From the IMG/VR virus record IMGVR_UViG_3300027759_000046, positions 124,001 to 188,000 of that record: a DNA stretch of 64,000 nucleotides, one strand, 5' to 3'. Under the pieces are notes generated by a model that was not told the origin of the DNA, did not search any database, and saw nothing but the letters and a program-made list of their open reading frames with translations. Numbering within the stretch: the stretch's first letter is position 1; each line of letters starts with the position of its first letter. A program made the translations under genes and the position numbers. Below, in pieces: positions 13,949-62,899 of this stretch.

Positions 13949-13991
13949 GTTATTTATAAATCTATTATACCAACTTTTTGAAAAAAGGTTT
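13949..13991 (-). promoter_or_regulatory. Tandem promoters for the tRNA operon: class II (AAACC-N17-TATAAT) and T4-late-like TATAAATA
   Basis: TATAAT at 13964-13969; TATAAATAAC at 13949-13958. Confidence 0.65.
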
Positions 13992-14577
13992 AGCTATTTT
14001 TTTCAATGATGTAAATTACATCAGAATAAATTTGTTCCATGTCTAATTCGCTTGCTCCCAAATGTTCAAGTGAAAATCCGTGATCTGGTACCAATTCATT
14101 GAATTCTCTAGACGGTCCACTACGCTCAAAAAATTCGCCATGGACCATGATTTCGCCAGATCTTAGAATTTCAAGCCTGAGTTGTGCATAAATTTGCTCC
14201 CAGTTGTATTCCATTTGTTGACGGCATGCATCTTCGTATTCGTAATCAGTCATTTGACCGTCTTCATTGTCGATTAGACTCTCTTGACCAAGCATCTCAA
14301 TTGCATCAGCTTGCGAACCTGTACTCAATACTTCTTCGTCAAACGTAGTTGAAAACCAATTCGCTAAATCGTAATCGTAATCAAAACCAGATTGAGCAGA
14401 CGTCAACAAGTCATCTTGTGATATCCAGATTGAAGACTCGCCGCTCTCTTGTGCAAGCTTAGCAGCTCGATGCGTTAGTCTAACTAGATCAGACGTCAAT
14501 CCCAAATCAGCAAGACGCCCTAGTCGATCTTCGTTTTCGGTTATGAATTCGTTAAATCTTTTAAGGGACCTCTTCAT
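13990..14577 (-). CDS. Acidic protein with capsid-targeting-like N-terminus and RLxxLGL tag
   Basis: MKRSLKRFNEFITE-NEDRLGRLADLGL. Confidence 0.75.
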   Translation of the reverse strand: MKRSLKRFNEFITENEDRLGRLADLGLTSDLVRLTHRAAKLAQESGESSIWISQDDLLTSAQSGFDYDYDLANWFSTTFDEEVLSTGSQADAIEMLGQESLIDNEDGQMTDYEYEDACRQQMEYNWEQIYAQLRLEILRSGEIMVHGEFFERSGPSREFNELVPDHGFSLEHLGASELDMEQIYSDVIYIIEKNS

Positions 14578-15237
14578 TTAGTATCGGCGTAATTTGGCCA
14601 ATGCTCTCTTAGCCTCTTCACCGCGCTGACGAATTTGATCTTTCTCTTCTTGTGACATGTTCTTGTATTGAGCATGAGTCGGATCATCTCCCCAACGTTC
14701 TAAGTGCTCCATATCTCTAACCCATTGTGTGTAATTACTAACTAAATCTTCAATGCTATCTCCTTCTTCGTTACGACCGTTTCGGTATGGGTAGTTAGAG
14801 TAACTGCCTCTTTTACGAAAGCCGTACTCATACAATTCGTCGTTTGGCTCGTATTCGTCCTCGTCATAGTATATGTCGGCTGGATCAAATCGCTCTTGTA
14901 CTGCTCTAGTAAAGGCAGTATCCTTTTGTAAGAAATCAATCGCTGCATCAATTTCAGCCTGATCGTTTGTTTCAACGTATTCATCTCCTTCAGCTACCGC
15001 CAATTCAATGTCAACGATTGTAAAATCTGAAATTCCGTAGAAGTCTCCAAGTTCATGGAATCCATGGCCTTCTTCTCTTTGGGATGGTGTGTATTCTGTT
15101 TCGCCTTCTACTTCAGCCGTGCAAATGTAATCACGACCGTCCATTGTGAATTCAAACTCGCTAATTGTAATAGTGTGAGATCTGCCGTGTCTAGATTCGT
15201 TTACGAATTGGCCGAATTTTGCTACAAAGTTCTTCAT
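14578..15237 (-). CDS. Acidic protein with capsid-targeting-like N-terminus
   Basis: MKNFVAKFGQFVNE. Confidence 0.75.
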   Translation of the reverse strand: MKNFVAKFGQFVNESRHGRSHTITISEFEFTMDGRDYICTAEVEGETEYTPSQREEGHGFHELGDFYGISDFTIVDIELAVAEGDEYVETNDQAEIDAAIDFLQKDTAFTRAVQERFDPADIYYDEDEYEPNDELYEYGFRKRGSYSNYPYRNGRNEEGDSIEDLVSNYTQWVRDMEHLERWGDDPTHAQYKNMSQEEKDQIRQRGEEAKRALAKLRRY

Positions 15238-15255
15238 TAAATAGTATCTTTCTTG

Positions 15256-15516
15256 TTATTTATCCAAGACTCGGTTCACTACTTCGATAGAAACATGCCC
15301 GTCTGCTAAATCCTTTTTAATTTTAACAGTCATTTCGGAATGACCTCTAATGAATAGAACATCGTCAACTACATCCTGTAAATCGTCAGAGCATAATTTC
15401 GGATGTACTATTCCAGGTTGGTAAGGATCAGTCTCAATCTTCTCGGTGAATTCTGCCAGCAGTCTTTTTAATTCCGCTTGCTCAGCCTTGCTTCTTAATT
15501 CTGAACCCTTTAACAT
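15256..15516 (-). CDS. Hypothetical protein
   Basis: 86-aa ORF in operon. Confidence 0.7.
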   Translation of the reverse strand: MLKGSELRSKAEQAELKRLLAEFTEKIETDPYQPGIVHPKLCSDDLQDVVDDVLFIRGHSEMTVKIKKDLADGHVSIEVVNRVLDK

Positions 15517-15517
15517 A

Positions 15518-16171
15518 TTATCCTACGTATTTTGCAAAGTTAACGGCTGCTTCTTGAGCCTCTTCGTATGTCTTGATTGTTTTAGAACCGCGAAGCCTAA
15601 ACGGAATGTGACCTACTGCCCATTCATTTAGGGTCTGGCCTTCTGGGATTGTGTCCAAGTGTTTTGTGAAGTACCTTTCGTATTGCAATAGATCTTCGTC
15701 AGCTGGAACCCAGCTTGCATCAAATAATTTATCGCCCTTACCGAAAGCTTGTGCAGCTCGGTGTGAGTAGCCAACCCATTGTTTAGTTGCTTTCTTCCAG
15801 GCAGTATGCGTGTGTGTTCCCTTCTTGGCAATAAGGCCAGCTGTATAGTACCAGTGACCTCTTGCAAGATCACCAACGTATCCTCCGTCTGGGTGCATGC
15901 ATGAGTTAGGCAAAGTATATGAATCTCCTTCTGGTCCAAACACATGATCTTCAACCAAAAGGCCTGTTGTATTACGAATAGTCTCGATCACTTCAGGGTT
16001 TGGAATAAACTCAAAACCTTCTTCAGTTTTAGTTGAATAAACTCGACTTACTAATTTAGTAAAGCCTAGATTTATATGTACTCGATTTAATCTACTTGTA
16101 CCTGAGTACTCTGGATACTTTTCAAATTTTAACTTGATTTTGCCTAGATACGGCGTGTGATTTTTAATCAT
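15518..16171 (-). CDS. Hypothetical protein
   Basis: 217-aa ORF, WVGYSHRA motif. Confidence 0.75.
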   Translation of the reverse strand: MIKNHTPYLGKIKLKFEKYPEYSGTSRLNRVHINLGFTKLVSRVYSTKTEEGFEFIPNPEVIETIRNTTGLLVEDHVFGPEGDSYTLPNSCMHPDGGYVGDLARGHWYYTAGLIAKKGTHTHTAWKKATKQWVGYSHRAAQAFGKGDKLFDASWVPADEDLLQYERYFTKHLDTIPEGQTLNEWAVGHIPFRLRGSKTIKTYEEAQEAAVNFAKYVG

Positions 16172-16191
16172 CTCTTTTATTTGTTTTTAGT

Positions 16192-16279
16192 TGGCGGAAG
16201 ATGTAGGATTCGAACCTACGGTACCTTGCAGTACAACAGTTTTCAAGACTGCCGCGATCGACCACTCTGCCAATCTTCC
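16192..16279 (-). tRNA. tRNA-Ser(TGA)
   Basis: GCAGT CTTGAAA ACTGT; long variable arm; CCA encoded. Confidence 0.95.
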
Positions 16280-16295
16280 GGTAGTTTATTTAGTA

Positions 16296-16580: not shown

Positions 16581-16612
16581 ATATTTATTATACTATAATA
16601 AGATGATTCGGT

Positions 16613-17596
16613 TTAGATCATGAAACTCATTCTCTTAAAGAGGTCGATCTGTTCCCGTGTTTCCAATTCAAAGATTCTACGAACCTTATCGTTTTCAATA
16701 ACGAGTATTTTCTGTACATCAGCGATGCTGCCAATATCAGTTAATCTCCATGAGCCTGAATGAGTTGTGCCGATGTTAATGATTTGAGAGTCATTAATTA
16801 TTAGTTGATGAGTCTTGCCAGAATTGGTCTCAGTATTCCAAACTACGAAACCTATACGGTCAGTTCGAGTATCATAAAAAGGAACTGCCCATGGAATCAT
16901 GTTCTGTGCCGATTGGCTGTCTATTGTGCCAAATGAATTACCGTGAGTTTTTAATTGAGCTCTGTCCTTTATTAGGACACTACCTTCTTGCAATACCTTT
17001 AATAGCATTGCCTCAGGCGATTTTGATAAGCTCTGGCGAATTGTCTCCTTGATAGCAGGCTCATCAAGATCTTTTAATAGGCTTGGTAGTTTTGATACTC
17101 GATACGATTGGCAACTGCCAAATAAAATATCATCAACGTTTTCCTGCCGACTCATATAGACTACGCTATCAAACTCTTCAAGTTTGTCCGAATTATCAAG
17201 AAATTCGGACACATTTTTAATGCAACAGTCGTATTCAATATGATGGACCTTATTGTATCCAAAGTGTCGAGCCATCACAAAACCATTTATCATTAATCTC
17301 CATACAGCTAAATGAGTATTTCCGTCTGATAAAAAAGCTGACATTATTCTACCGTTATCACCTGGGCTAAACCATGGCTGGTTGACTAGATCAGGATCAG
17401 TTAAGATTTCATTCTTTTTATCAAATAGACTTAGTACAACCATTTTCTGAATGTCCACCGGAATTGGCGTATGACTCGATATCATTATATCAAAGTCATC
17501 TTGAAAATCTTGCAAAGACTCGACTAGTCGCCTAAGAGTGGATTCGCGCCTATCGTCTGGGCAATACGCAGTAATTAAGATTAGGTCTTTCTGCAT
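16613..17596 (-). CDS. Putative glycosyltransferase-like protein
   Basis: LILITAY...ISSH...HHIEYD GT-A-like pattern; lies in a sugar-enzyme cluster. Confidence 0.5.
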   Translation of the reverse strand: MQKDLILITAYCPDDRRESTLRRLVESLQDFQDDFDIMISSHTPIPVDIQKMVVLSLFDKKNEILTDPDLVNQPWFSPGDNGRIMSAFLSDGNTHLAVWRLMINGFVMARHFGYNKVHHIEYDCCIKNVSEFLDNSDKLEEFDSVVYMSRQENVDDILFGSCQSYRVSKLPSLLKDLDEPAIKETIRQSLSKSPEAMLLKVLQEGSVLIKDRAQLKTHGNSFGTIDSQSAQNMIPWAVPFYDTRTDRIGFVVWNTETNSGKTHQLIINDSQIINIGTTHSGSWRLTDIGSIADVQKILVIENDKVRRIFELETREQIDLFKRMSFMI

Positions 17597-18159
17597 TAAT
17601 TGTATTTTAAGATTTGATCAAGGTCTAAGTGTTCCTCAACTCGCTTGCGATCCTTAATATATTTGGCGGGAATTCCGCCATATAATTTATAAGATTCGTA
17701 TTCTCCGTTAACTAGGCTTAGTGCTCCGAAACCACATCCTTCTGGAATAACTGATCCTGGTAAAACAACTGAATTGCAGCCAATGATTGCATATTTTCCA
17801 ATATAGACTGGGCGATGATCAACATCAGTAAATTCAACTGGAACAAGTGGACCAATTAATACTGCCCCTGAGTAATCATCACTTGACGAATACACTGAAC
17901 ATTTTCCTGAAATATTTGCAAAGTCCTCTACTGTAATTTTGCCTTGGCCAATCAGAGAAACTCCACATGAAATATGCACATAGTCGCCAATCTTGATTCC
18001 TTCTGATCCTGCGCTTAAAATACAAAAATCGTCAATTCGAGTGTTTGAACCAATTTCAATATTTTTTGCATTATAGATTGAGGCTTTGTCCGAGATTAAA
18101 ACATTTTTGCCTAACGCCTTAAATCCAATTTTTAATAGGTCTTCTCTTGTGTAAAACAT
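17596..18159 (-). CDS. Hexapeptide-repeat acetyltransferase (copy 1)
   Basis: Left-handed beta-helix repeats; SSSDDYSG; IGCNSVVLPG. Confidence 0.9.
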   Translation of the reverse strand: MFYTREDLLKIGFKALGKNVLISDKASIYNAKNIEIGSNTRIDDFCILSAGSEGIKIGDYVHISCGVSLIGQGKITVEDFANISGKCSVYSSSDDYSGAVLIGPLVPVEFTDVDHRPVYIGKYAIIGCNSVVLPGSVIPEGCGFGALSLVNGEYESYKLYGGIPAKYIKDRKRVEEHLDLDQILKYN

Positions 18160-18236
18160 ATTTTTTTATGTATTTTTTAGTTGTTATAATTACTTGATCG
18201 ATTTCCTTTTTATAATTAAGATTAAATCTTTCTGCA

Positions 18237-18803
18237 TTAATTGTATTTTGAGATTTGATCAATGTCTAGATGATCTTCAACACGTTTTCTATTCTTAATG
18301 AATTTCGCTGGAGTACCTGCGTAAAGAGTGTATGCGTCGTATTCGCCGTTTGCTAAACTTAGTGCTCCAAAACAACATCCTTCTTGGACAATTGTTCCAG
18401 GTAAAACGACTGAACCACTTCCAATTATAACGTATTTGCCTAATTCGACTGGACGATGGTCAGTGTTTGTAAATTCAGAAGGAATCGTTGGACCTAATAA
18501 GTAAGATCCTGAATAATCATCACTCGAAGAATATACGGATACTCTAGAAGAGAGTCCGCTGAAATCCCCCATTGTAATTTTACCTTTGCCGATTAGAGTT
18601 GCAAAGCATGCAATGTGAACATAGTTGCCTAGTTCGATACCTCCTTCTCCGGCGGATAGGATCGCAAAATCGTCAATTCTGCAGTTATCACCAATTGATA
18701 TGTTGGCAGAATTGTAGATTGAACACTTTTCTGATATTAAAACATTTTTTCCCAAATGTTTAAAATTCATTTTACTTAATTGTTCTGTACTGTAAAAGCT
18801 CAT
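18237..18803 (-). CDS. Hexapeptide-repeat acetyltransferase (copy 2)
   Basis: Close paralog of 17596-18159 with the same C-terminus D...KYN. Confidence 0.9.
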   Translation of the reverse strand: MSFYSTEQLSKMNFKHLGKNVLISEKCSIYNSANISIGDNCRIDDFAILSAGEGGIELGNYVHIACFATLIGKGKITMGDFSGLSSRVSVYSSSDDYSGSYLLGPTIPSEFTNTDHRPVELGKYVIIGSGSVVLPGTIVQEGCCFGALSLANGEYDAYTLYAGTPAKFIKNRKRVEDHLDIDQISKYN

Positions 18804-19438
18804 AATATACCTCCGTCTATTTTTATGTTTATTCCAGTTACGTATTCTGTTTCAATTATAAAATCGACAGTTCTGGATAACTCTTCGATTTCGCCGAATC
18901 TTTTTAATCCGATTGTTTCTTTTATTGCATTTAGATTTCCTTCAGGAATTCTGTATGTCATGCCACCGTCAAAATATCCCAATTGCAGAGTATTCGCAGT
19001 AATTCCCAATCCAATATTTTCAACTGAGATATTTTTAACGAATTTATCTAAAAAAGCTTTACAGCTAGAATAGATTGATGTTCCCATTACATTCTTTTCT
19101 GCAAGAACTGAGCTAATCAAGATGATTCGGCCAAATTTATTCTTTCGCATGTTCTTTAGACAGGCTGACACAACATTAATTGAGCCAGTTATGTTAACCC
19201 TAACGAGTGTTTCAACCTGTTCTTCAGTCAATTTATGTATGAAACCGTCTGCATTTGCGCCAGCTAAATTTACAACAACATCAAATTGATTATTTTCAAA
19301 GAAGAGCTCACATGCGCTCTTGTTCCTAATGTCTAGATCTTTCGATCCAATTGCACTAATATCGTATTTGTGAGATAGCGATTTAGCAAGCTGACTTCCA
19401 AGCCCGCCTGTGCCACCAATAATTAGAACTTTTCTCAT
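18800..19438 (-). CDS. SDR family oxidoreductase (FabG-like)
   Basis: IIGGTGGLG, NLAG, YSSCK, TG.NI.IDGG. Confidence 0.9.
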   Translation of the reverse strand: MRKVLIIGGTGGLGSQLAKSLSHKYDISAIGSKDLDIRNKSACELFFENNQFDVVVNLAGANADGFIHKLTEEQVETLVRVNITGSINVVSACLKNMRKNKFGRIILISSVLAEKNVMGTSIYSSCKAFLDKFVKNISVENIGLGITANTLQLGYFDGGMTYRIPEGNLNAIKETIGLKRFGEIEELSRTVDFIIETEYVTGINIKIDGGIL

Positions 19439-20064
19439 TTCTTATAGATATCAAATTTTGAAAGATCTGGATACGGTAGCTCAAGATCAGCATTTTGCTT
19501 TTTGGTTCCATCCGTATTATAGAATTGGCCCATTAGTAATAGTCCACGTGTTGCAAGTTCTGGCATCATGTAGAAATTCCAGCCTAGCATATCAAAGTTG
19601 TCATCGTGATACGAACACTCGCGTCGCCCAGAGTATCTAGCTCTTTTAAACCATAGGTAAGCTTCGTGATTATCAGTTAAGATTGCACCGCCTTTACTTA
19701 ATTTAAAATGCTTGTAAGGACCGGTAAATGAGATACACATGTGAGTTCCAGGTTTGTACATGTCTGCTGTAAAACTTAGAGCTGAATCCCAAACATTGGT
19801 TGGAGCCAATTGATATGCTCCTTTAATTGTTCGACCTTCGACTGGTGTAAATTTTACCTTTCCGCCAGCGTGAATGATTTCACAAGGAACTGATGGATAT
19901 GTACGGGCTGGAATCGTTATTTCCTGACCAGTAATCTTTTCGTAGTAGAGTGCAAGGAATAGAGCATTACTCTGATTATCCACAGTAATACAGTAAGGTG
20001 CACCAGTATAGTCACATAGAGCTTTTTCAAAGTCTTCGGTTATTTTATAAACACCATTTGCCAT
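19435..20064 (-). CDS. Compact DegT/DnrJ/EryC1/StrS aminotransferase-like protein
   Basis: FEKAL...TG...TY.SVP...DSA...SFTGPYK...GGAILT...GWNFYM; only 209 aa. Confidence 0.75.
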   Translation of the reverse strand: MANGVYKITEDFEKALCDYTGAPYCITVDNQSNALFLALYYEKITGQEITIPARTYPSVPCEIIHAGGKVKFTPVEGRTIKGAYQLAPTNVWDSALSFTADMYKPGTHMCISFTGPYKHFKLSKGGAILTDNHEAYLWFKRARYSGRRECSYHDDNFDMLGWNFYMMPELATRGLLLMGQFYNTDGTKKQNADLELPYPDLSKFDIYKK

Positions 20065-20113
20065 TGTTATTGATTATTATTTTATCTATTCTACTCTGAA
20101 TTGATCTTGAGTT

Positions 20114-20344
20114 TTAGAAAGGCTTCCTATTCTGAAGAGCTTCCCGTTGCCATAGTGGCGTTCGATATTGAATCATTTTGCCCGTCATTTCGTCAAGCGG
20201 CATGCCGAACTGTTGACAGCGATCGGATATTGGGCGATCGTCCTCGTCTTCCGGTTGTAACCATTCTTCGTAAAAAAATCCTAGTGCATGATCGTGACCG
20301 TACACTAGAAGTTTATCTGCAGCGCGTTTTGTGTATCTACTCAT
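20114..20344 (-). CDS. Hypothetical protein
   Basis: YGHDHALGFF motif; stop-start overlap with upstream gene. Confidence 0.7.
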   Translation of the reverse strand: MSRYTKRAADKLLVYGHDHALGFFYEEWLQPEDEDDRPISDRCQQFGMPLDEMTGKMIQYRTPLWQREALQNRKPF

Positions 20345-20997
20345 AGTTCTATTTCAATTGGATTTTGATAATATAATCTGTAACCTAAATCAACAGCCGA
20401 CGCATTAATGAATGTCGTACCGTCTTCTTCATGTACTCCTCTAGCTTCGTGAATGTGGCCAAAGACATGTACCTTAGGCTTTATCTCTTTTACCTTCTTT
20501 AATAGAAGAGGGCAACCGACATTCAAACCTTCTCTTACTGTTTCGTCCAAGATTCCATGAGGCGGGCCGTGTGTTATTAGAACATCGACTCCATCAGGTA
20601 TTAAATCCCAGTGCTGGCCTATCTCATTTGCCAATCGGTTAAATGCCCAATTATGGAACCATGGAGTTACTGGACTGCCCCAGAATTTGATTCCTTCTAT
20701 TGTAACTCCACTATCATTTAAGTAGGTAACTCCAGGATACTCGGCTAAAATTTTAGCCGCTGTGTCGGGCATTGTCTCAAAAAGAAAATCGTGGTTACCT
20801 GCAATTAATATCTTGTGCATGTACGGTAACTGGCTAAACCAGTCTAGGAAGTCTCTAATCTCACCAGCAGTTCCTCGACCTGATACATCACCTGCGTGTA
20901 CCAAGATTGGTCCGCCTGGCAACATGCTCGTAAGATCATCACGAGTATTCTTGTCTTTAATTAACCAGTGCGTGTCGCTAATGAATGTAATTTTCAT
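20341..20997 (-). CDS. Calcineurin-like metallophosphoesterase
   Basis: ISDTH, HAGD, AGNHD, ITHGPP, FGHIHE. Confidence 0.9.
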   Translation of the reverse strand: MKITFISDTHWLIKDKNTRDDLTSMLPGGPILVHAGDVSGRGTAGEIRDFLDWFSQLPYMHKILIAGNHDFLFETMPDTAAKILAEYPGVTYLNDSGVTIEGIKFWGSPVTPWFHNWAFNRLANEIGQHWDLIPDGVDVLITHGPPHGILDETVREGLNVGCPLLLKKVKEIKPKVHVFGHIHEARGVHEEDGTTFINASAVDLGYRLYYQNPIEIEL

Positions 20998-21002
20998 GGT
21001 TC

Positions 21003-21275
21003 TTATCTAAATTGATTAATAATTTCTGTGATAGCGGATTGAGGTTTTACGCCGCTTAGAGTCTTTACCACTTCACCATTCTTTTCAAAAATAATTGTTG
21101 GTATTGATCGTATGTTGTATTTTCGACATAGATCTGGGTCTTCGTCTGCGTTTACCTTTATGATCTCAACTTCGCTATCTGGTTTATTATACTCATTAGT
21201 GAGGCTCTCTAGCACAGGCATCATTGCCTTACATGGACCGCACCATGGAGCCCAAAAATCAATTACTTTTAACAT
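21003..21275 (-). CDS. trxA: Thioredoxin
   Basis: DFWAPWCGPCK; IRSIPT. Confidence 0.95.
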   Translation of the reverse strand: MLKVIDFWAPWCGPCKAMMPVLESLTNEYNKPDSEVEIIKVNADEDPDLCRKYNIRSIPTIIFEKNGEVVKTLSGVKPQSAITEIINQFR

Positions 21276-21284
21276 AGTTTCTTA

Positions 21285-21521
21285 TTATTTTATTAATGTG
21301 TCTGGTTTCTTGGGCTCCTTGATTTGAAACTGCTCGTTCACGTGTCCGCATTTTGTGCAAACGAATGTCGGAACTGGTACAATCATGTCCTCAGCTGAAC
21401 CAGTTAGCAGCCTTGATATTTTTCGTAAATAACTTGCTTCAGTAAATGTTGAGTTTCCACATGATTCGCAAACGATTGCAGTTGAATTTTCAAGGCCCAC
21501 TCGTACTTGTTGATTTTCCAT
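21285..21521 (-). CDS. Zn-ribbon hypothetical protein
   Basis: CESC...CTKC. Confidence 0.75.
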   Translation of the reverse strand: MENQQVRVGLENSTAIVCESCGNSTFTEASYLRKISRLLTGSAEDMIVPVPTFVCTKCGHVNEQFQIKEPKKPDTLIK

Positions 21522-21529
21522 ATCAGTTA

Positions 21530-22189
21530 TTATTTTCTATTGTCTATGTATATGTAAATTTCTTTATAATATTGAATAAAATGTTCGTTTTTTAAATCCC
21601 ACGTGATATCAGCCCCGTCCACTGAAAAGACTCTATAGTTATTGAAATTCGGTAATATGGTATCTCTAAAATGTCTAAATTTTTCCTTTAATATTCCACC
21701 ACTCAAATGAAATTCTCCCACAATTTTTGGAATGGTCTTTAAATAAGGAATATTTTCTTCTGAAAATATATCATACTCCCCACCTTCACACTCAAACTTA
21801 AAAAAATCTATATGTTCCAATCGATTTAATTTAATAAACTTGTTAAATGTTAAAGTATTAACTGACTCATCATACCCGTCCCAATTTATTTTACAATATT
21901 TGTCACTAGTGATTGCAGCATTTGTAAAAGACACAGGGTATCCATGTAAATTTTTTTTCAACGTATCAAAAAAAACCGATAAAGGTTCAACCGCATAACA
22001 ATGTTTTGGTTTTTTATCTAAAACTCTATAAGTAAATTCACCGACGGTTGCTCCAATGTCTACAACAATATCACCTTCTTCAACTTCGAAAAACTTTTCA
22101 TAATCATTTACTCCGTTAAATATTTCGTCTGTTACTTGTTTTTTGAAACTTTCTGAGGTTGGCCCCCAATTAAAATTATCTAAGTTCAT
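21530..22189 (-). CDS. FkbM-family methyltransferase
   Basis: VDIGATVG, AVEP, KFECEGGE. Confidence 0.8.
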   Translation of the reverse strand: MNLDNFNWGPTSESFKKQVTDEIFNGVNDYEKFFEVEEGDIVVDIGATVGEFTYRVLDKKPKHCYAVEPLSVFFDTLKKNLHGYPVSFTNAAITSDKYCKINWDGYDESVNTLTFNKFIKLNRLEHIDFFKFECEGGEYDIFSEENIPYLKTIPKIVGEFHLSGGILKEKFRHFRDTILPNFNNYRVFSVDGADITWDLKNEHFIQYYKEIYIYIDNRK

Positions 22190-29651: not shown

Positions 29652-31340
29652 TTAGTAACCGTAGTCGTCTTCGTCGTCTTCTGAATAGTTCTTGTTGTCC
29701 CAAGTGTATTCAAGATCGTCAGTATCGTGGTTGCGAGTAATACCGTATTCTCTTTCATATTCACGAGCGTTCTCTGAATAGAAATCCCATAGACCCATTG
29801 CATCGTCTTCATGATGAATCGAATCCATGTAATCTTTGTATTCTGCTCTAAGCATCCTCATGAATTCGGAGAGAGTTGTTGCCTTTGGATCGTCAACCAA
29901 TCCCAATTGCTTAAGGCGTCCAATATTGTTTTGACGATTCTCTTTTAACATCTGTGAAAGTCTTTCAACCTCTTTAAAGTCTCTAGCATCGAGTGCTTGA
30001 TCAATTAGATCTTGGATCTCAGTCTGACTAAGTTCTCTATCTTCCGGCTCTTCAGCTTGGAAGCTTGGGAAATCCTGATCTTCAGGTTCTTCAGCATACT
30101 GATCTTCAGCATACGGATCTTCGTAATTAGCAGAGTCAACTGAGTCTTGCCAATCCTGAAGTTCTTGTTTAATTATTTGAATCAGCTTACGAACTTTGAC
30201 TTGAGCCTTTGGCATAGCCTCTTCAGCCGCAGTGATTTCAGCCTCAGTGTATTGAGGCTCTCTTTCGCCTGGCGTTCTGTATAATGGAGCCGCTGTAAAT
30301 ATTAAATTCATTAGCTCAAGGAATTCTTTGTCAGGTATTAGATTTGCATCAATCATTTTACCCCAAACGTATTCACGACCATTTTCAATATCATCAACTT
30401 CCGAAAAAGACTGGATAAAATCTCTAAGATCTGCTGCGGTTAATTTAGCACGCTTTAGGTCTTGAACCTCGTCTTGTGCAGTATCAGTATTCATAAATAC
30501 TTTAGCAATAACTTCATCACTAAGATGTGCAAGACCTCGCTGATTAATTATTCCGTAAATTGCCTTGATTGCCTCGTGGAATAGCATTGCCTGGTCTAGA
30601 CCCAAAATGGTTAAAGTTGGAGAAGTTTGAACCTCCTCAGCGGAGTCTTCAGTCTCTTCAGACTCTTGCTCTTCTTCTTGCTCTTCCTTTGCTTTAATTG
30701 GTTTCCATTCAATCTTAGATATTCCGCTTAATCCATCGCCCATTTCAATCATGCGAGCGCCTACCTCTTCTGGGATTCTCCAGTCGCGAGCATTACAAAT
30801 ATCAGTAATCATAACCAATAGCTCAACCATCTTGTTGGCATTGGCTTCGCCGAATAGTTGAGTTAATCCATTTACGTTAGTATCGCCCATTAACATCTTC
30901 TTGGAATTAATGGCCTCGCCTTGCGCAATCATGTTCATGATCTTACGCTTGTAAATTGCATTCTTTGTATCTTCGTCTTCAATATCTTTAAACGATGGCA
31001 TCTCCGGTTTTTCATCAGATTTTTCCTGATCCATCTTTTGTTTCATTTCACGTTGGTCGGTCGGGATTCTGATGTCTAATTCGGTGCCTTCTAAAATTAG
31101 TCCGTATTTTTCCATGATAACTTCTCGAGTTAGATCCTCAATCTGTTTCTCTTTACCGCGTTGCATCATCTGTACTTGACCAACGGCTCTCATTAAAGAG
31201 CCCATGTCGCGACCGTATTTGGCCTCAACCTCTCTTGCGCTCTGTTCAGCACGTTGATTTAAGGAATTTAAGTATTCTGGCGAAATCGCGGGATTACCCT
31301 TGATATCCGCTTCGTTTAAGAATTGTTTAAAGCTCTTCAT
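29652..31340 (-). CDS. Large acidic protein with capsid-targeting-like N-terminus
   Basis: MKSFKQFLNE; internal LKE-NRQNNIGRLKQLGLVDD. Confidence 0.8.
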   Translation of the reverse strand: MKSFKQFLNEADIKGNPAISPEYLNSLNQRAEQSAREVEAKYGRDMGSLMRAVGQVQMMQRGKEKQIEDLTREVIMEKYGLILEGTELDIRIPTDQREMKQKMDQEKSDEKPEMPSFKDIEDEDTKNAIYKRKIMNMIAQGEAINSKKMLMGDTNVNGLTQLFGEANANKMVELLVMITDICNARDWRIPEEVGARMIEMGDGLSGISKIEWKPIKAKEEQEEEQESEETEDSAEEVQTSPTLTILGLDQAMLFHEAIKAIYGIINQRGLAHLSDEVIAKVFMNTDTAQDEVQDLKRAKLTAADLRDFIQSFSEVDDIENGREYVWGKMIDANLIPDKEFLELMNLIFTAAPLYRTPGEREPQYTEAEITAAEEAMPKAQVKVRKLIQIIKQELQDWQDSVDSANYEDPYAEDQYAEEPEDQDFPSFQAEEPEDRELSQTEIQDLIDQALDARDFKEVERLSQMLKENRQNNIGRLKQLGLVDDPKATTLSEFMRMLRAEYKDYMDSIHHEDDAMGLWDFYSENAREYEREYGITRNHDTDDLEYTWDNKNYSEDDEDDYGY

Positions 31341-44860: not shown

Positions 44861-45319
44861 TTATTTTGTCTTCTTCACATTGGCCCAAGACTTGCTTGGA
44901 CTTGCCGCATTTACTCTGGCCATTGCCCATTGGTGAGCCGTCATACCAGGTCTTGAACCTGAAGAATAGAACGCGCCCAGTCCCTTGGCATATTCCCGTT
45001 TAAGATCTGCAAACGAGTAACCTTTCTTGGTTGCAACCTTTCTGATCTTAGCAAGAGTCTCTTTGCTTAGCTTGGCCTCATTAACTTGACTGTCCTTGCG
45101 TGGAGTGTTCTTCCAACCCGATTTACTACGCTCCTGTTTTTCCATCTCATCTCTAAGACGGTACGCCGCCTGAGCATCTCCCTTCTTAAGTAGATCCTTG
45201 GCCTTGTCCAGCTTCTTGTCTCGTGAGCTGCCTTCCGGTGCTTTGTAGATTGCAGGATTCTCTGACTTCTTTTCGGTAATCGGTAACTGCCAGTTTTCAA
45301 ATAGTTTAATGTGCTTCAC
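44861..45319 (-). CDS. Basic protein with CTS-like N-terminus (DUF5824-like C-domain)
   Basis: MKHIKLFENW; KGLGAFYSSGSRPG...QWAMARVN. Confidence 0.65.
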   Translation of the reverse strand: MKHIKLFENWQLPITEKKSENPAIYKAPEGSSRDKKLDKAKDLLKKGDAQAAYRLRDEMEKQERSKSGWKNTPRKDSQVNEAKLSKETLAKIRKVATKKGYSFADLKREYAKGLGAFYSSGSRPGMTAHQWAMARVNAASPSKSWANVKKTK

Positions 45320-47120: not shown

Positions 47121-47565
47121 CTGACTTAGGTTTAGTAGTTATGTCAAAGGTTGCATAGATCTTTCGGGCCGCAATCTCGTGCCAGTCAGGAATGTTGCGT
47201 TCGTGTTTCTTCTGTTCCTCCTTGAGCCGTTGAGTAATTGCCTTTATGATCTGTTCTTTATCAGCAGACTCTGCCGATCCCGGCCAGTCCGTGTACCTAA
47301 GACCCCACTGCACATTGGTCCACAGCATCTGCCGTTCGGCCATGGCCTTGCGCATTTTCAGGTGCTTACGTAGGTAGGCAACGCCCCATGCCTTCCATTC
47401 CTCTGCCTGTTCAACCGTCATGGTCCAGTCCCGATACCACGCGTCCTTGCGATCCTTGATGTCTTCATAGGTTACGGGGTGGCCTGCAATCTCAAACATC
47501 TTGTTAAGGATATCGACGACTGACTGGTCTTGCTTCTGTTCTCGGGTTAGTCTGACAGTTTTCAT
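47110..47565 (-). CDS. Hypothetical protein
   Basis: 151-aa ORF; class II promoter upstream. Confidence 0.75.
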   Translation of the reverse strand: MKTVRLTREQKQDQSVVDILNKMFEIAGHPVTYEDIKDRKDAWYRDWTMTVEQAEEWKAWGVAYLRKHLKMRKAMAERQMLWTNVQWGLRYTDWPGSAESADKEQIIKAITQRLKEEQKKHERNIPDWHEIAARKIYATFDITTKPKSDEK

Positions 47566-47609
47566 GGTAAGTCTATTATACCAAATATTGGGGAAAAGGT
47601 TATTGCAGA

Positions 47610-48434
47610 CTAGGCAGTCTTAACGATATCAGCTAGGGTCTTGGCTCTAGCGCCGACCTGTTTCGCCCAGTCCGAGTTTAGCATCTCCGATGAGGCAGCA
47701 CTGAAATTTTGTTGTTTGATTTGGGCTAGAAAGTTCGTGAAGGCCGAGAGACCCTTTTTACCAAGATTGAAAACCATTTCGGTTATAACTCCCTGCACGG
47801 CAGGCGGTAGAGAAGGTAGAGTTGGCACAAGCTCCTGTGCATCAGCCTTGGCCTGACCAAGATCGGTCAGTAGCAGCGAGTCTATTTGGGCCTGAGTTAA
47901 TGATGAGGTTCCGGCCTTGATCTTTTCGGGATTGGCTCCAACCTTTTTTAGTTGGGCAACAGCGTCTTCACGGTTAAGATTGAAACCTACACCAACTGTT
48001 GGAATCTGCCTGGAGTCTAGATACTTAACGGGCTTGGAACCCTCATGACGGATAACTCGGTCCTTGATTGAGGCAATGATTGGGTCGGTCGTTGGCGGCG
48101 GTGCAGTAAACGAATTCAGGTACCGTTCGGCCCCAATGGTCTTGACGTGGGTCATGATCTGATTACGGAAGCCAGAGTCCAGGATTCCAAGCTCGCCGTT
48201 GACCGCGTCGCCCACACTTGGATAGGCCCATGCTCTCTGCTGATCGTCATGCCCTGCCTTTAGGGCCTGATTGACCTTGACAAAAGAGGCAGCATCCGGA
48301 ATCTGGCGGATTGCCGAGACCAGACTCTCCTCGTCCGTGCCGAGTCCTGAGACTGCGGTCTGAATCTGTGCTGCCAGCTGGTCAGCAGTCGCGGCCTCGT
48401 TTAGCCAGCTCTCAAATAGGTTAATGTGTTTCAT
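47610..48434 (-). CDS. CTS-like peptide + annexin-like repeat + T4-type (GH24) lysozyme
   Basis: MKHINLFESWLNE; AVSGLGTDEESLV...SVGDAVNGELG; RHEG...YLD...PTVGVGFN...EMVFNLG...SDWAKQVGARA. Confidence 0.85.
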   Translation of the reverse strand: MKHINLFESWLNEAATADQLAAQIQTAVSGLGTDEESLVSAIRQIPDAASFVKVNQALKAGHDDQQRAWAYPSVGDAVNGELGILDSGFRNQIMTHVKTIGAERYLNSFTAPPPTTDPIIASIKDRVIRHEGSKPVKYLDSRQIPTVGVGFNLNREDAVAQLKKVGANPEKIKAGTSSLTQAQIDSLLLTDLGQAKADAQELVPTLPSLPPAVQGVITEMVFNLGKKGLSAFTNFLAQIKQQNFSAASSEMLNSDWAKQVGARAKTLADIVKTA

Positions 48435-48453
48435 TGTTAATAGTTGTCTGTGA

Positions 48454-48918
48454 TTAGCGAGCGTATCGCTTCAAGGTCTGTGCTGCCGCAGCTGGCGTCA
48501 CGTTGCGCCAAGTAACTCGGTTTGAAATCTCCTGTGCCAAGTCGTCGATCGTCATGCTCTGATCTTGCATGAATCTGTCAACAAGCTCTGCAACCTCTTC
48601 GCTGCCACGGTTGAAGTACTCGTCTGCTAGCACCATCTCCAAATTATCTGGACGGTTGCGGTACTTTGCTGCGGTCTGAGCATTACGACCTCCGTTAACA
48701 TCAGCCTCGCGCCAGTCTCTAGTACGAGCCGAGACCCTGTCAAAACGATCGCGATCAGCGGGTTTCATGGCCTCGTAATCGTCCACTATATCTAGCAGGT
48801 CCTGGTACGAGCCATCGTCCGCGCCACTACTATGGCTGTGGGCTCTACGCAGTAGGTCATGGGCTGGGTTGCTGCCCTCGGCTAGGAATTCGGTAAAGCG
48901 TTTAACTTGTGTCTTCAT
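48454..48918 (-). CDS. Protein with CTS-like N-terminus
   Basis: MKTQVKRFTEFLAE (compare T4 IPIII MKTYQEFIAE). Confidence 0.8.
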   Translation of the reverse strand: MKTQVKRFTEFLAEGSNPAHDLLRRAHSHSSGADDGSYQDLLDIVDDYEAMKPADRDRFDRVSARTRDWREADVNGGRNAQTAAKYRNRPDNLEMVLADEYFNRGSEEVAELVDRFMQDQSMTIDDLAQEISNRVTWRNVTPAAAAQTLKRYAR

Positions 48919-48942
48919 CTGTTAATATTTGTTTTTATCTGA

Positions 48943-49473
48943 TTATTTATCTAAATCTGAGTCCAGCATATAGGCTGCATCGTGGTCTTCGCCTCTCCAC
49001 CAGACTGCACGGGCTCCGCTGCGTTGGTCAAGCCAAACCTCAAGGTCAATCGAGCCAAAGTTCTCTTGCGCAATGATCTCAGCGGACTCGGCCTGCACAA
49101 GATCTTGCTGGTCATCGAGCGCAAAGAGACCGGGTAACGAGCGCACGAGCGCCTTGAATCTGGGCATGTCGTGCCAGGTCGTTGCAGTTGTATTGAAGAC
49201 CTCGACCACCTGTTCCAGAGGTAGAACCTGCAGTACGGCGGCCTGATCCGCCAAGCCAAGCGCCTGCAGTCGAGCCGCAGCCGGGCCAAGCTCAAGGCCC
49301 AGCACCTTGCACGCCCACAGAGCGGAGTCAACCGTGTCCAGATAGTAGTTGACATCGTTGTCCAGCTGGACGGCCATCAGCTCTTCCGAAAAGTTATCCG
49401 GATTGACGACATCTCGGAGCGTTGCAATATCGTGCTCACGCGCGTAGTTCTCAAATAGTTTAAGGTGCTTCAT
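48943..49473 (-). CDS. Protein with CTS-like N-terminus and RLxxLGL tag
   Basis: MKHLKLFENY; ARLQALGLAD; late promoter at 49477-49486. Confidence 0.75.
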   Translation of the reverse strand: MKHLKLFENYAREHDIATLRDVVNPDNFSEELMAVQLDNDVNYYLDTVDSALWACKVLGLELGPAAARLQALGLADQAAVLQVLPLEQVVEVFNTTATTWHDMPRFKALVRSLPGLFALDDQQDLVQAESAEIIAQENFGSIDLEVWLDQRSGARAVWWRGEDHDAAYMLDSDLDK

Positions 49474-49573
49474 GCTTTTATTTATTCGATAGGTAGACCC
49501 GGTTCCAGGCCTTTTCGAGCCTCAAGACTCCGGTGCGCGCCCTACAACAATTAGGTAAAGATACCCAGTCTAC

Positions 49574-49666
49574 TTATACTAGAAAAAAGATAAAGATACA
49601 AGACAACACTACAGCCAGACCTATAGGCCAGACCCAACTCCATTCTATCTTACAAGTTCTTTTCAT
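49574..49666 (-). CDS. 30-aa membrane peptide (not in ORF track)
   Basis: MKRTCKIEWSWVWPIGLAVVLSCIFIFFLV after GAGTATATTAG. Confidence 0.45.
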   Translation of the reverse strand: MKRTCKIEWSWVWPIGLAVVLSCIFIFFLV

Positions 49667-49698
49667 AAGCCTAATATACTCTATACCCGGTAACCGGG

Positions 49699-49879
49699 AC
49701 TAGGGAGTACCTGGCAACCTGACCAGCCTCCAGACCCTATAGACCCAGACACGGGACTAGGGAGTAACCCCGAACCCTGAGCCAGACCCCAGACTCGCCT
49801 GACCCCGATGGGACTAGGGAGTGCCGGGCAGCCAGCCGCCCTTGGGGTACCTGCTCGGCCTGCTTAAACACTAGGGAGT
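49699..49879 (+). repeat. Array of four ACTAGGGAGT sites at exact 57-bp period
   Basis: Starts at 49699, 49756, 49813, 49870; 47-bp intervening sequences diverged. Confidence 0.95.
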
Positions 49880-50013
49880 ACGGTGACCCCCTCGGCCTCG
49901 CCGGAAACTCTGGACTCCAGGGTCTCGCGGGGCCGGGGATGCCGAGACTATAGGGACTGGACGGGACATGGGGATCCGCGGAGTCTCGGCAGACCGGGTA
50001 TAAATAAGTCTAT

Positions 50014-50682
50014 ATGGAAACACGCGATACACAAGACGGAGCCGAGGATAACAGAGATTACCTTGCGCCCGGCCACGGACCTACTGGCAATCTGGTCTAT
50101 AAGAAAGATGCAGCTCGGTACCTAGGTATAAGCCTTAAGACTCTAGAGCGCTATGTGAAACAGGGTCTGGTCAAGCCCTTTAAGAACGAGGTAAACGGCC
50201 GAACCTACTTTGACCAGCTGGATCTACTAGCCTTACTAGGGAGTAGACTACCCCAAGAACGAGAGGTTGTGCTGTACTGCCGGGCTGCGGGGATTCCGGA
50301 TCAGGGTAAAGCCGGCGTATCCAGCCAGGCCAGACTGCGAGACCAGGTAGACCGCTGTACCGAGTACTGTACCAAGGCTGGGGTCCGGGTCGATCGTATA
50401 ATCCAAGAGATTGGAAAGGGGCACACCCTGAATGGTCGCAGCGGGATTGACCAATTGCTGGATTTAGTGTTCCGAAAGAAGGTATCAATGATCGTGATCG
50501 AGTGCCCGGATCGTCTGGCTCGTTGGGGCATGGGCGAGGTCTTGGAGAGATTCCTGACCTGGCACGGTGTAGAGCTGCATGTTATAAACAAGGGCTGGTC
50601 ACGTGCCGAATTCCGCGAAGAGGTAAAAGAAGATCTTGCGGGAATCCTATTCGAGGCGAAACGCCTGCTAGGAGAAGCTTAA
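50014..50682 (+). CDS. IS607 TnpA-like serine recombinase (HTH + resolvase fold), catalytic Ser apparently lost
   Basis: AARYLGIS.KTL.RY...G HTH; YCRAA in place of YxRVS; EIGKG...GR; DRLARWG; no adjacent tnpB; promoter TATAAATA at 49999-50006. Confidence 0.85.
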   Translation: METRDTQDGAEDNRDYLAPGHGPTGNLVYKKDAARYLGISLKTLERYVKQGLVKPFKNEVNGRTYFDQLDLLALLGSRLPQEREVVLYCRAAGIPDQGKAGVSSQARLRDQVDRCTEYCTKAGVRVDRIIQEIGKGHTLNGRSGIDQLLDLVFRKKVSMIVIECPDRLARWGMGEVLERFLTWHGVELHVINKGWSRAEFREEVKEDLAGILFEAKRLLGEA

Positions 50683-51053
50683 CTAAATATTGTTGGATTA
50701 CGGCGGCCCCATTCTCTGAGCAAGACGCCAGCCTGGGAGTTTGCCTCGTTCTCTATGTCAGATCCGTCGGCACCGTCCAAGACCTTGCCGCTGTCGCGCT
50801 GATGATGGTGTACCAATTCATGGGCCAAGGTTCTGTACCAGTCTGCACGGACTCTGGTTCCGCGAAGAACCCAGATCTCATTGGACTGTGGATTAAAGTA
50901 TCCCATTGACTTATTTAACATAGCCTCCCTATGGTCATCAGAAATGTGGATCGTTGGGGTGCTGGTCCAGCCTAACTGCTGACGACAGAAGTGTACGAAC
51001 TCCTCTAATTCGGAGTCTTCCTGCCATTCACGGGATTCTTTAATGTATTTCAT
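50679..51053 (-). CDS. HExxH metallopeptidase-like protein with CTS-like start
   Basis: MKYIKE; TLAHELVHH...E.EAN..AG; late promoter at 51057-51066. Confidence 0.75.
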   Translation of the reverse strand: MKYIKESREWQEDSELEEFVHFCRQQLGWTSTPTIHISDDHREAMLNKSMGYFNPQSNEIWVLRGTRVRADWYRTLAHELVHHHQRDSGKVLDGADGSDIENEANSQAGVLLREWGRRNPTIFS

Positions 51054-51249
51054 ATAGTTATTTATTCATGGAGTTCTCAGCGAACCCCAGAAATGTGACC
51101 TTTGTACCTGTCTCGGGGTTTCCCCCAGCACGGGGCGAGCTCCAGAGCCCATGCCAGGTCGGCACGGCCCCGGGGCTTTGGGCGCCTTATTCTAATATAC
51201 CATTTTGCCCATCATTCGGCAATTAAATAATAAAAAAATAAGATACGTT

Positions 51250-59092: not shown

Positions 59093-59096
59093 ATTG

Positions 59097-61274: not shown

Positions 61275-61297
61275 GGTTGATTGGTTTAATTGATTAA

Positions 61298-61376: not shown

Positions 61377-61437
61377 CTGGCGGACTGACGTGCAGGTCGG
61401 AGTCTACCCTCTGCGATCCGGTTAAAGATCGAACCTT

Positions 61438-61461
61438 AAAAAACCGGGCGAACCCGGTTCT
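61438..61461 (-). terminator. Intrinsic terminator
   Basis: AACCGGG-TTCG-CCCGGTT followed by TTTT. Confidence 0.85.
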
Positions 61462-61478
61462 CTGTGGTGGGTTGAGGT

Positions 61479-61622
61479 TTAGAACTCGAACGCGGTCGTT
61501 GAGGAGATATTACCGATTACGACATTTACGATTACGACAACGATTCCGATAATCGCGATTCCCGCTAGACACACGGTCCAAGTTTGCATTGCACGTAGTG
61601 CGATCATTTCTGTTTTGCTCAT
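61479..61622 (-). CDS. Small membrane protein (47 aa, not in ORF track)
   Basis: MSKTEMIALRAMQTWTVCLAGIAIIGIVVVIVNVVIGNISSTTAFEF; promoter cassette at 61652-61718. Confidence 0.65.
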   Translation of the reverse strand: MSKTEMIALRAMQTWTVCLAGIAIIGIVVVIVNVVIGNISSTTAFEF

Positions 61623-61695
61623 GGTTGATTTGGTTAATTGGTTAAACATAAGTAAATATAATAATTATCTTTGATATAAAAAAATTTCTGATGAA

Positions 61696-61932
61696 TTATT
61701 TTTCAGAAGTTATTAACAATTCCGGGTTAACGCTTTCGGATTCCGCATAGATCTTTAGACATTGCGGACAGCCTACCGTCTCGAGACCGGATATCCTGGC
61801 CCAGTTGTTGCTAAGCGCTGGCGTTCCGCACAGGTTTCCTGTTCCGCTTTTGTAGATGTGGGCCGTGTTGTTCCATACGTTGCCCTTGTTTCCGAAGATG
61901 GAGAAGTTTGGTTTGAGGTCTTTTGTTTGCAT
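61696..61932 (-). CDS. Small Cys/His protein
   Basis: AHI...LCG...GC..C; promoter TATATTTAC at 61955-61963. Confidence 0.7.
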   Translation of the reverse strand: MQTKDLKPNFSIFGNKGNVWNNTAHIYKSGTGNLCGTPALSNNWARISGLETVGCPQCLKIYAESESVNPELLITSEK

Positions 61933-62131
61933 TGCTTTCTTTTTTATTGGTTAAGTAAATATAACAAAAAAACCCCAAACAAAAAAATCTGGGGTCTTTT
62001 ATTTTCTTCTTTTTTTCTAGAGGCAATGGATAAGGATTCCGTAAAATCCTATTCCTGCCAAAAAGTAAATCAGGTTGTTCAACCACTTAGGGTATTTTTC
62101 CATGCTTCTCGTTTAGGGTTAATAATAGATT

Positions 62132-62293
62132 CTATTCTTCGGGTCCAATGAGGTCCCATGCGGTTTCGCCGGTTGGCTTGCCGTTGAAGGTGATGGAGTA
62201 GTTGGGGTCCATGCCGCTCTCGAGGACATCTGCTAAGAGAGCAGGAAGGGTTGGGAATTCCTTTTGGTAGTAGGCGCAGTCTAATGAATACAT
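62132..62293 (-). CDS. Small hypothetical protein
   Basis: Start moved to MYSLDCAYY because the track start overlaps the promoter TTATATTTG (62321-62329), an exact Bacteroidota -7 consensus. Confidence 0.65.
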   Translation of the reverse strand: MYSLDCAYYQKEFPTLPALLADVLESGMDPNYSITFNGKPTGETAWDLIGPEE

Positions 62294-62371
62294 ATCTTTT
62301 CTTTTTAATTGGTTAAGATACAAATATAACCAAAATACTTGATATTAAAAAATCCTGGTCAACTTATTTTC

Positions 62372-62899
62372 CTAGCTGAATACAAGTATTCCTTCATCCG
62401 CTGCGAGTTTAAACGCCTTAAGGAAATCTTCATACACTTCCAAGAACCAGCCATTATCCTCGTTTAGCGGATCGCCCACATATCCTTCCGCCTTGTGCCG
62501 GTACCGTACAAAATCCTGATATAGACTCTTCGCAACGGGACCGCCGATTGCACCATCACAATCCGAATGGTTGATAAGACCCACAAAGGGTTTATCCTTC
62601 CACTCGTCGGGATTGGTCCATACCCGTTCAGGACTTACCTCCAACATGGTCAGACACAGAACTTTGCGCCAGGCATTATATCCTGAATAGGAGCCAGCAC
62701 GGAAGTCATAGCTCTCGCTGCGGTCAGTTGCATAGTAGGTTCCCGGACTCAGACCCTTGTAGGAGTTGGCATCGAACGTTTCTATTCGGTATACTTCTTC
62801 GCCGCGCTCGGCAAGGCCAAGTTCTTCAAGACGTTTTTGACCTGCCGAGAACTCGGTCTCTTCTTGAATCTTTGAGTAGGCATAGATATCTAATCCCAT
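62372..62899 (-). CDS. Hypothetical protein with RLxxLGL segment
   Basis: MGLDIYAY...KRLEELGLAE...FRAGSYSGYN.WR...LI.HSDCDG. Confidence 0.75.
   Translation of the reverse strand: MGLDIYAYSKIQEETEFSAGQKRLEELGLAERGEEVYRIETFDANSYKGLSPGTYYATDRSESYDFRAGSYSGYNAWRKVLCLTMLEVSPERVWTNPDEWKDKPFVGLINHSDCDGAIGGPVAKSLYQDFVRYRHKAEGYVGDPLNEDNGWFLEVYEDFLKAFKLAADEGILVFS

Follow-up and report, generated by a model that had tools for sequence, protein, structure and literature searches.

The window considered here is a stretch of 64,000 nucleotides within a 253,137-bp virus contig (39% GC, 94% complete by the CheckV estimate), which is the genome of an uncultured T4-like jumbo phage. Along its minus strand, in the coding sequences of six otherwise dissimilar proteins, lie eight copies of one short peptide word, RLxxLGL (Table 1). 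The original prediction, made from the DNA alone, had listed eight such copies in six proteins, and all of them were found where it placed them: a six-frame translation of the window contains exactly eight RL..LGL words, every one in frame and all within six open reading frames (ORFs). Genome-wide the count rises to 15 copies, spread over 12 credible proteins; one more, in a doubtful 101-residue ORF, is left out of what are called here the real copies. RLxxLGL is a genuine short linear motif, tied to head maturation and apparently so far undescribed. The prediction had not recognised it as a known motif, and the T4 and jumbo-phage literature searched likewise holds no description of it.

How unusual is such a recurrence? 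From amino-acid composition only 0.044 copies would be expected in the window as against the eight observed, and in 2000 trials of per-protein shuffling the window never yielded more than two. The prediction had proposed motif enrichment in the genome and its relatives as a check, and the word passes it without being singled out beforehand. When all 5-of-7 gapped words were scored by the number of distinct proteins that hold them, a procedure adopted to avoid post-hoc bias, RL..LGL came out well ahead of every other word, in 12 proteins where 0.11 would be expected. A hidden Markov model built from the copies returns 15 sites at 16-24 bits, with the next match at only 6 bits. From copy to copy, Arg, Leu and Gly are encoded by a thorough mixture of synonymous codons, which rules out an origin as a DNA repeat and implies that selection acts on the peptide and not on the DNA. 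Paralogy of the carriers can be rejected too, since all-against-all BLASTP finds them alike only in the motif and the initial ~10 residues; the 175-residue protein does align collinearly at 24% with module 2 of the 449-residue protein (E=2.3), which leaves remote homology of these two possible. Within the 15 copies L2, G6 and L7 are invariant and the flanks are polar, while position 9 is D or E in 9/15, so that the trailing acid originally written into the motif holds as a preference and not as a fixed part of it. Pfam and PHROG profile searches of all carriers gave no significant match (the only family match of the 195-residue protein is to DUF2779, below threshold), and look-ups in a protein atlas returned nothing usable.

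The carriers share a second feature at their extreme N-termini. Ten of the 12 begin with a segment resembling the capsid-targeting sequence (CTS) of T4, recognised here by the pattern MK-h-K-x-F-x-x-F-[ILV]-x-E and present in some 35-41 of the ~300 ORFs of the genome; the association of tag and motif has a Fisher p of 1.3e-7, in a table that counts 13 carrier ORFs including the doubtful one. Examples are MKTFSQFINE, MKSFKQFLNE and MVKTFSQFITE, to be compared with MKTYQEFIAE in T4. T4 itself is known to have only a handful of CTS-bearing internal proteins, far fewer than the tagged ORFs found here. Within the T4 CTS, positions 4 and 7 have been shown experimentally to determine targeting and positions 8 and 10 processing (PMC9026906; PMC3012670). 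The targeting residues are aromatic or hydrophobic, and those for processing are [ILV] at 8 and E at 10. The tags of the carriers fit these determinants at all four positions. A protease of the gp21 family is also encoded: a Peptidase_S77 domain (PF03420, 35 bits, above the cut-off) lies at positions 65965-66306 of the genome, and PHROG 207, head maturation protease, matches residues 28-221 of the same 660-residue protease-scaffold fusion (E=4e-37), the gene of which adjoins that of the major head protein.

The gene of this fusion lies outside the window (genome positions 64429-66411, L066:5429-7411, minus strand), and its product has a scaffold-like region of ~440 residues. Scaffold-like residues ~290-440 consist of tandem repeats of ~11 residues, I-x-Y-[ST]-E-Y-[LIV]-A-E-x-L-N-x, each resembling the core of a CTS and ending in a protease site, a likeness which suggests that the CTS tags may mimic the repeats. 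The genes for the protease-scaffold and the major head protein are directly preceded by one for a J-domain (DnaJ-like) protein, which also lies outside the window (66478-67356) and is kept in 7/7 compared genomes with an identity below the median. CTS-like N-termini are found further afield as well, with ~15 of them in 41 kb of the distant huge phage LR745206.

Where does the motif lie relative to the predicted protease sites? The original claim that it usually stands just after one is borne out, in that a [LIV]-x-E site occurs 6-22 residues upstream of 11/15 real copies genome-wide (11/16 in an alternative tally) and of 7/8 in the window, about twice the ~34% expected by chance at random positions in the same proteins. 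The two sites that had been named, LKE before RLKQLGL and IQE before RLEELGL, are indeed there, at distances of 7 and 9 residues. The remaining copy in the window, RLQALGL of the 176-residue protein, has no [LIV]-x-E within 25 residues. Given the site just upstream, the CTS-like tags and the gp21-type protease, maturation would leave the motif at or near a new N-terminus.

Table 1. Motif copies, carrier genes and other features of the window (window coordinates; a slash marks a predicted cut)
Feature	Position	Strand	Remarks
RLADLGL	14497..14517	-	residues 21-27 of 195-residue protein; predicted cut ITE/N 6 residues upstream
195-residue carrier ORF	13990..14577	-	orphan; CTS-like tag MKRSLKRFNEFITE precedes motif
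RLKQLGL	29898..29918	-	residues 475-481 of 562-residue protein; 7 residues past LKE/N
562-residue carrier ORF	29652..31340	-	CTS-like N-terminus MKSFKQFLNE
VLRELGL, degenerate copy	31585..31605	-	residues 470-476 of 561-residue protein (ORF 31327-33012); Arg lacking
RLVDLGL	33771..33791	-	residues 35-41 of 292-residue protein; 22 residues past ISE/N
292-residue carrier ORF	33015..33893	-	CTS-like MKLLKFAQYISE; fold matches nothing known
RLVQLGL	41300..41320	-	residues 21-27, module 1 of 449-residue protein; 12 residues past CTS-like MKYLKLYE
RLDRLGL	40847..40867	-	residues 172-178, module 2 of 449-residue protein; invariant PKLNE/S 22 residues upstream
RLFRLGL	40430..40450	-	residues 311-317, module 3 of 449-residue protein; (I/V/L)-(N/D)-E 8 residues upstream
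449-residue carrier ORF	40031..41380	-	three modules; motifs at residues 21/172/311
RLQALGL	49252..49272	-	residues 68-74 of 176-residue protein
176-residue carrier ORF	48943..49473	-	CTS-like MKHLKLFENY; in GC-rich island beside serine recombinase
RLEELGL	62813..62833	-	residues 23-29 of 175-residue protein; 9 residues past IQE/E
175-residue carrier ORF	62372..62899	-	N-terminus MGLDIYAYSKIQE only loosely CTS-like
255-residue nucleotidyltransferase	33896..34663	-	CTS-tagged, without motif; heads apparent late operon with three motif-bearing genes
Phage_lysozyme-domain protein	47610..48434	-	CTS-tagged, without motif; in GC-rich island
Further CTS-tagged ORF	14578..15237
Further CTS-tagged ORF	44861..45319
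Further CTS-tagged ORF	48454..48918
GC-rich island	47200..51200		50-60% GC vs 39% for the genome; three CTS-tagged genes
Serine recombinase with helix-turn-helix	50014..50682	+	in GC-rich island
Sugar-modification-type gene cluster	16613..22189	-
RNA ligase	3693..4916
RNA ligase	7326..8438

The site and the motif travel together, and this is clearest in the three-module protein of 449 residues. In 7 homologs of 49-93% identity its three motifs are invariant apart from one R-to-K, and conservation extends to the PKLNE/S and (I/V/L)-(N/D)-E sites, whereas the stretch that links a site to its motif is variable and in one case holds an 8-residue insertion; one homolog, P0002, has a fourth module that opens with the same site and motif. 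The 562-residue protein has a body that is 57-80% identical across the clade and 29% identical in huge phages, and RLKQLGL opens a C-terminal add-on of ~90 residues to it; the orthologs in three relatives (G001, G002 and G004) stop at about residue 466. The degenerate copy in the neighbouring 561-residue protein has its counterpart, VLRELGI, at the same place in the L179 ortholog. For a 400-residue protein the C-terminal half is a separate CTS-tagged gene in G006, fused in the genome studied here (G000), and the G002 ortholog stops at the site and lacks that half. Similarly, G001, G004 and G006 encode the second module of a 216-residue protein as a CTS-tagged gene of its own, and the G000 protein retains at the point of fusion what appears to be a fossil CTS, ISEFGEYLEE/S. 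The ortholog of the 292-residue protein is fused behind other modules in G004 (as a 702-residue fusion) and in L181. These gains, losses and fusions of modules as wholes point to an evolutionary unit composed of a tag or site, a short linker, the motif and a variable domain.

The shape of the motif can be judged from AlphaFold2 (AF2) models of two carriers. For the 292-residue protein (48 sequences; predicted local distance difference test, pLDDT, of 83) the CTS is disordered, and two helices, at residues 17-38 and 44-64, are joined by a turn, the first of them ending at the motif; the model of the 449-residue protein (8 sequences) has a pLDDT of 50 and was used for secondary structure only. 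As assigned by DSSP, the helices end at residues 24, 175 and 314 of the 449-residue protein and at 38 of the 292-residue protein, in each case 1-2 residues before the Gly. The element that follows differs by carrier, being modelled as a helix in some and a beta-strand in others; in module 3 of the 449-residue protein the motif is succeeded by a beta-alpha-beta-beta-alpha-beta domain (pLDDT 70-83). The invariant residues together with these helix ends fit a Schellman C-cap, with its hydrophobic C3, Gly at C' and hydrophobic C'', positions which we take to be L2, G6 and L7, the Asn at -3 presumably acting as the N-cap. On these models, then, the motif is a short N-terminal helix closed by a Schellman-type Gly cap. 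When the fold of the 292-residue model was compared with PDB and BFVD, the matches were limited to phage homologs that are themselves uncharacterised and a generic arrangement of three helices, and the motif profile run against PDB sequences found only chance helix ends (E>=0.36).

Further evidence on the motif comes from other phages; G001-G006, L179, L181, L184 and P0002 denote relatives or sources of homologs. A model of the motif recovers all 15 copies in G000, as a positive control, and 11 in G003, which is the closest relative (81% median protein identity, with a protease-scaffold 94% identical to that of G000) and uses the same RLxxLGL. Other lineages have dialects of their own. Thus, G004 has N-L-x-R-L-x-x-L-G-I in ~11 copies and G001 has E-L-x-x-M-G-F, each the top word in its own unbiased count, whilst E-L-x-x-V-G-(L/V/A) is found in G002 and G005, [RQH]-L-x-x-[LI]-G-[LMI] in G006 and x-L-x-(D/E)-L-G-L in L181 and L184. 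The dialect words are found in proteins of the same kind, often at sites that are orthologous. Over six orthologous families, G000, G003 and G004 have Arg at position 1 wherever the ortholog exists, G006 has Arg, Gln or His, and G001, G002 and G005 have Glu in 5/6 families. The R-to-E change recurs in parallel at a minimum of five orthologous loci, and to turn Arg into Glu requires two nucleotide changes. Parallel multi-nucleotide changes at independent loci without homogenisation of the DNA are best explained by selection by one shared reader; genome-specific dialects that change in step at orthologous loci argue that something reads the motif in trans, and the switch from Arg to Glu argues that this reader is not DNA.

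How general is the word? Among 117 homologs of the 292-residue protein only the Gly and Leu2 are broadly kept at the motif site, Gly40 being invariant in the 48 that were aligned and the other positions varying by lineage, a pattern which suggests that a broader type of helix end, L-x-x-hydrophobic-G-hydrophobic, underlies the motif and has been tuned in particular lineages into the strict word of seven residues. Further variants at the site in other genomes are YLLSIGV and YMVEMGY, and IMG/VR has no close relatives. In the 41 kb of LR745206 there is neither a match to the motif model nor an analogous word.

The best explanation, tentative and quite possible while falling short of probable, is that RLxxLGL is a docking helix on mature head cargo that is read in trans. 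The motif would be an amphipathic helix of two to three turns, often Asn N-capped, hydrophobic at -2, 2, 5 and 7 and Gly-capped, that marks the start of each protease-released module among the prohead-targeted proteins. In such a scheme (i) precursors, often polyproteins of several modules, would be carried into the scaffolding core by the N-terminal CTS; (ii) the gp21-family protease would cut after [LIV]-x-E, behind the tag and between the modules; (iii) the new N-terminus of every mature piece would bear the motif helix or lie close to it; and (iv) one common partner, co-evolving in each phage lineage, would read the helix in trans. The likeliest purpose of this would be to retain or position the matured cargo within the head, or else to pass it on for exit. 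Packaging, cleavage, the trans partner and the effect of binding are steps that we infer. The CTS-tagged proteins that lack the motif include a CHAP peptidase and a phage lysozyme in addition to the nucleotidyltransferase, and the first two are typical ejected cargo, which counts in favour of the docking helix.

If there is one reader, is it a known head protein? A complex prediction that combined the major capsid protein (MCP), the protease domain (1-230) and residues 1-45 of the 195-residue carrier returned no answer (score 0.00), and speaks neither for nor against binding. A strict charge-swap screen of 27,002 orthologous columns in seven genomes, in which a partner of the switching Arg would change from acidic to basic, remained at background, with one acid-to-basic column; in the opposite direction its only column was the motif's own Arg. 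The one column is D52 of a calcineurin-like metallophosphoesterase (window 20341-20997, minus strand), acidic in the R-dialect and basic in the E-dialect genomes, and this protein was set aside as a reader, having neither a tag nor a head context, the match being judged probably coincidental. A relaxed screen gave a symmetric background of 8 versus 10 columns, and in neither screen did the MCP, the protease-scaffold or the J-domain protein show a complementary change. A profile of presence and absence across the genomes picked out only five small proteins without known function. The lack of complementary change in these three proteins counts slightly against a simple salt bridge with any conserved protein of the head, and leaves room for a fast-evolving phage partner or for a host partner.

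These blank screens and the uninformative profile weigh against a trans-read docking helix, and they are joined by several other observations. Four of the 15 copies have no [LIV]-x-E site nearby; about two thirds of the CTS-tagged proteins do without the motif, about one third carrying it; and some lineages have few or loose copies. The location of the carriers in the virion is itself inferred, the relatives all being uncultured. In the model of the 292-residue protein, moreover, the motif helix sits within a confident helical hairpin, so that in this carrier it may not be freely exposed and the element may be partly structural. The anatomy given in the original prediction holds, and its proposal of a short helix exposed by maturation stands in part: the two AF2 models support a helix end, whereas the hairpin and the four copies without a site may not fit general exposure. 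The suggestion of a docking or sorting signal, a reasonable guess, fares similarly, in that the dialects argue for reading in trans and the charge-swap screens are at background.

The hairpin leads to an unlikely though serious alternative, that the motif is purely structural and each N-terminal helix, closed by a Schellman Gly cap, packs against the domain of its own protein without any trans partner, the shared word reflecting common constraints of folding and stability on matured N-termini. The match of L2, G6 and L7 to C3, C' and C'', the helix that ends at the motif in both models, the invariant Gly of the 292-residue family with its well-predicted turn into a second helix, and the want of a partner in the complex prediction and the screens are all as this account would have them. 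What it fails to explain is why five identical residues, including a surface Arg, recur across 12 unrelated proteins, why L-to-I, L-to-F and R-to-E switches are made jointly across whole genomes through multi-nucleotide changes, and why the cap is followed by a helix in some carriers and a strand in others. A Schellman cap is a generic feature, and capping does not account for the conservation of Arg and Leu5, for the link to tags and sites or for the genome-wide dialects.

Could the helix instead serve the protease? It is rather unlikely that the motif is an exosite, a helix past the scissile bond that docks on the protease or the protease-scaffold and aids the cut, with one copy per junction. 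Its steady placement 6-22 residues C-terminal to predicted sites, one to each polyprotein junction, is what an exosite would require; dialects would follow from co-evolution with the protease, and G000 and G003 have both the same exact word and nearly the same protease-scaffold. However, G003 is simply the closest relative overall, the protease-scaffold has no complementary change between R-type and E-type genomes, and four copies have no nearby site to assist. The roughly two thirds of CTS-tagged proteins, and the MCP, that have sites without the motif indicate that it is not needed for cleavage in general.

Comparably doubtful is a host-directed tag, where after ejection a host factor such as a chaperone or a common host target recognises the helix and the dialects track the hosts. 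The failure of any conserved phage protein to change in complement, the separate copy on each mature piece and the J-domain protein encoded beside the head genes accord with it. The client motif of Hsp70 (DnaK) is a Leu-rich hydrophobic core with basic flanks, and the Leu-rich core of RLxxLGL flanked by Arg is loosely like such peptides; the E-type dialects, with their acidic flanks, fit binding of this type poorly. Ejection of the carriers is moreover an assumption of this account. A related and improbable version treats the motif as a delivery address, an N-terminal tag exposed only after head maturation, for which a phage exit component or a host factor would be the reader at or following ejection; the reader, in the latter case possibly an Hsp70 recruited through the phage J-domain protein, would thread, pull or refold dozens of different cargo modules into the cell.

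Very improbable is a DNA-binding, SAP/HeH-like helix-extended-helix that ties internal proteins to the packaged DNA, for although L-x-x-L-G-L, a loop and a second helix in several carriers recall such domains, there is no Pfam, PHROG or PDB-profile match (PDB E>=0.36), several carriers have a beta-strand after the motif, and the Glu for Arg and acidic flanks of whole lineages already disfavour contact with DNA as far as the aligned words can tell. In T4 the internal proteins do lie embedded in the packaged DNA (PMC3012670).

To return to the docking helix, its nearest analogue is the T4 CTS (IPI-III, gp21), likewise a short peptide signal common to unrelated and fast-evolving head cargo and linked to [LI]-x-E cleavage by a gp21-family protease, with CTS-like N-termini on the carriers here. 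Yet RLxxLGL is not itself a CTS. The T4 signal occupies the extreme N-terminal ~10 residues and is cut off, whereas RLxxLGL has a different sequence, lies 6-22 residues past the predicted cut and would be retained, and also occurs internally, one per module (internal positions 68-475). The T4 literature searched makes no reference to a second motif of such a kind. Encapsulin cargo-loading peptides and the scaffold-to-coat helix of P22 are short Gly/Leu or helical peptides that tether cargo inside an HK97-fold shell; they are usually C-terminal, their binding to the shell has been demonstrated, and shell and tag co-evolve. RLxxLGL resembles them as a short conserved peptide of this kind on diverse cargo, but differs in its consensus and in a capsid protein without complementary change. 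Oomycete RxLR and Plasmodium PEXEL proteins, which belong to eukaryotic secretory systems, consist of a leader, a processing site, a short motif and a variable effector domain, and here the same layout is found in many unrelated proteins of one genome; the analogy is of layout only, sequence and machinery being unrelated.

Why should such a word matter? T4-type phages load diverse, fast-evolving head proteins by means of one removable tag, and the later organisation, retention and release of this cargo is an open question. If real, a modular second tag that outlasts maturation and changes in step with lineage would provide a handle on the fate of matured cargo, define the pieces that share a fate and predict maps of polyprotein processing in uncultured jumbo phages, and the R-type and E-type dialects constitute a natural swap with which the reader might be found. 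Possible uses lie in refining T4-style platforms for protein packaging and delivery and in better annotation of the orphan genes of huge phages. Were it a delivery address, it would be the phage counterpart of the RxLR and PEXEL translocation signals, with dialects that track the reader; were it only a helix cap, it would be a caution against over-reading recurrent short words.

The carriers also have a transcriptional context. The word ATAAATA stands 24-33 nt upstream of 62/283 genes, among them the protease-scaffold gene and many large genes of structural appearance; it is probably the late promoter, the analogue of T4 TATAAATA. Most operons that contain carriers sit behind it, although its enrichment at tagged genes is weak when taken alone (2.1-fold, p=0.06). 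For instance, the 195-residue carrier lies directly downstream of the CTS-tagged ORF 14578-15237, which has ATAAATA 26 nt upstream; other examples in the window precede the nucleotidyltransferase and the ORF 48454-48918. The nearest phages in databases are uncultured huge phages and Lak phages, at 32-52% identity.

The three CTS-tagged genes of the GC-rich island encode the lysozyme-domain protein, a 154-residue orphan and the RLQALGL carrier, and a small putative metallopeptidase (a weak match) lies there as well; a recombinase similar to that of the island occurs near a homolog of the 292-residue carrier on another contig. Elsewhere in the window, the sugar-modification-type cluster comprises a hexapeptide transferase, a short-chain dehydrogenase/epimerase, a DegT-type aminotransferase fragment and an FkbM methyltransferase, and in addition to the two RNA ligases there are several Laminin_G_3 proteins. 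Repeated peptides of other kinds are also found in these genomes, namely very large collagen-like GTSG-type arrays with hundreds of copies in G001, G002 and G004, and a Thr/Ala/Pro-rich repeat, TT.TA.P, with 14 copies in G000.

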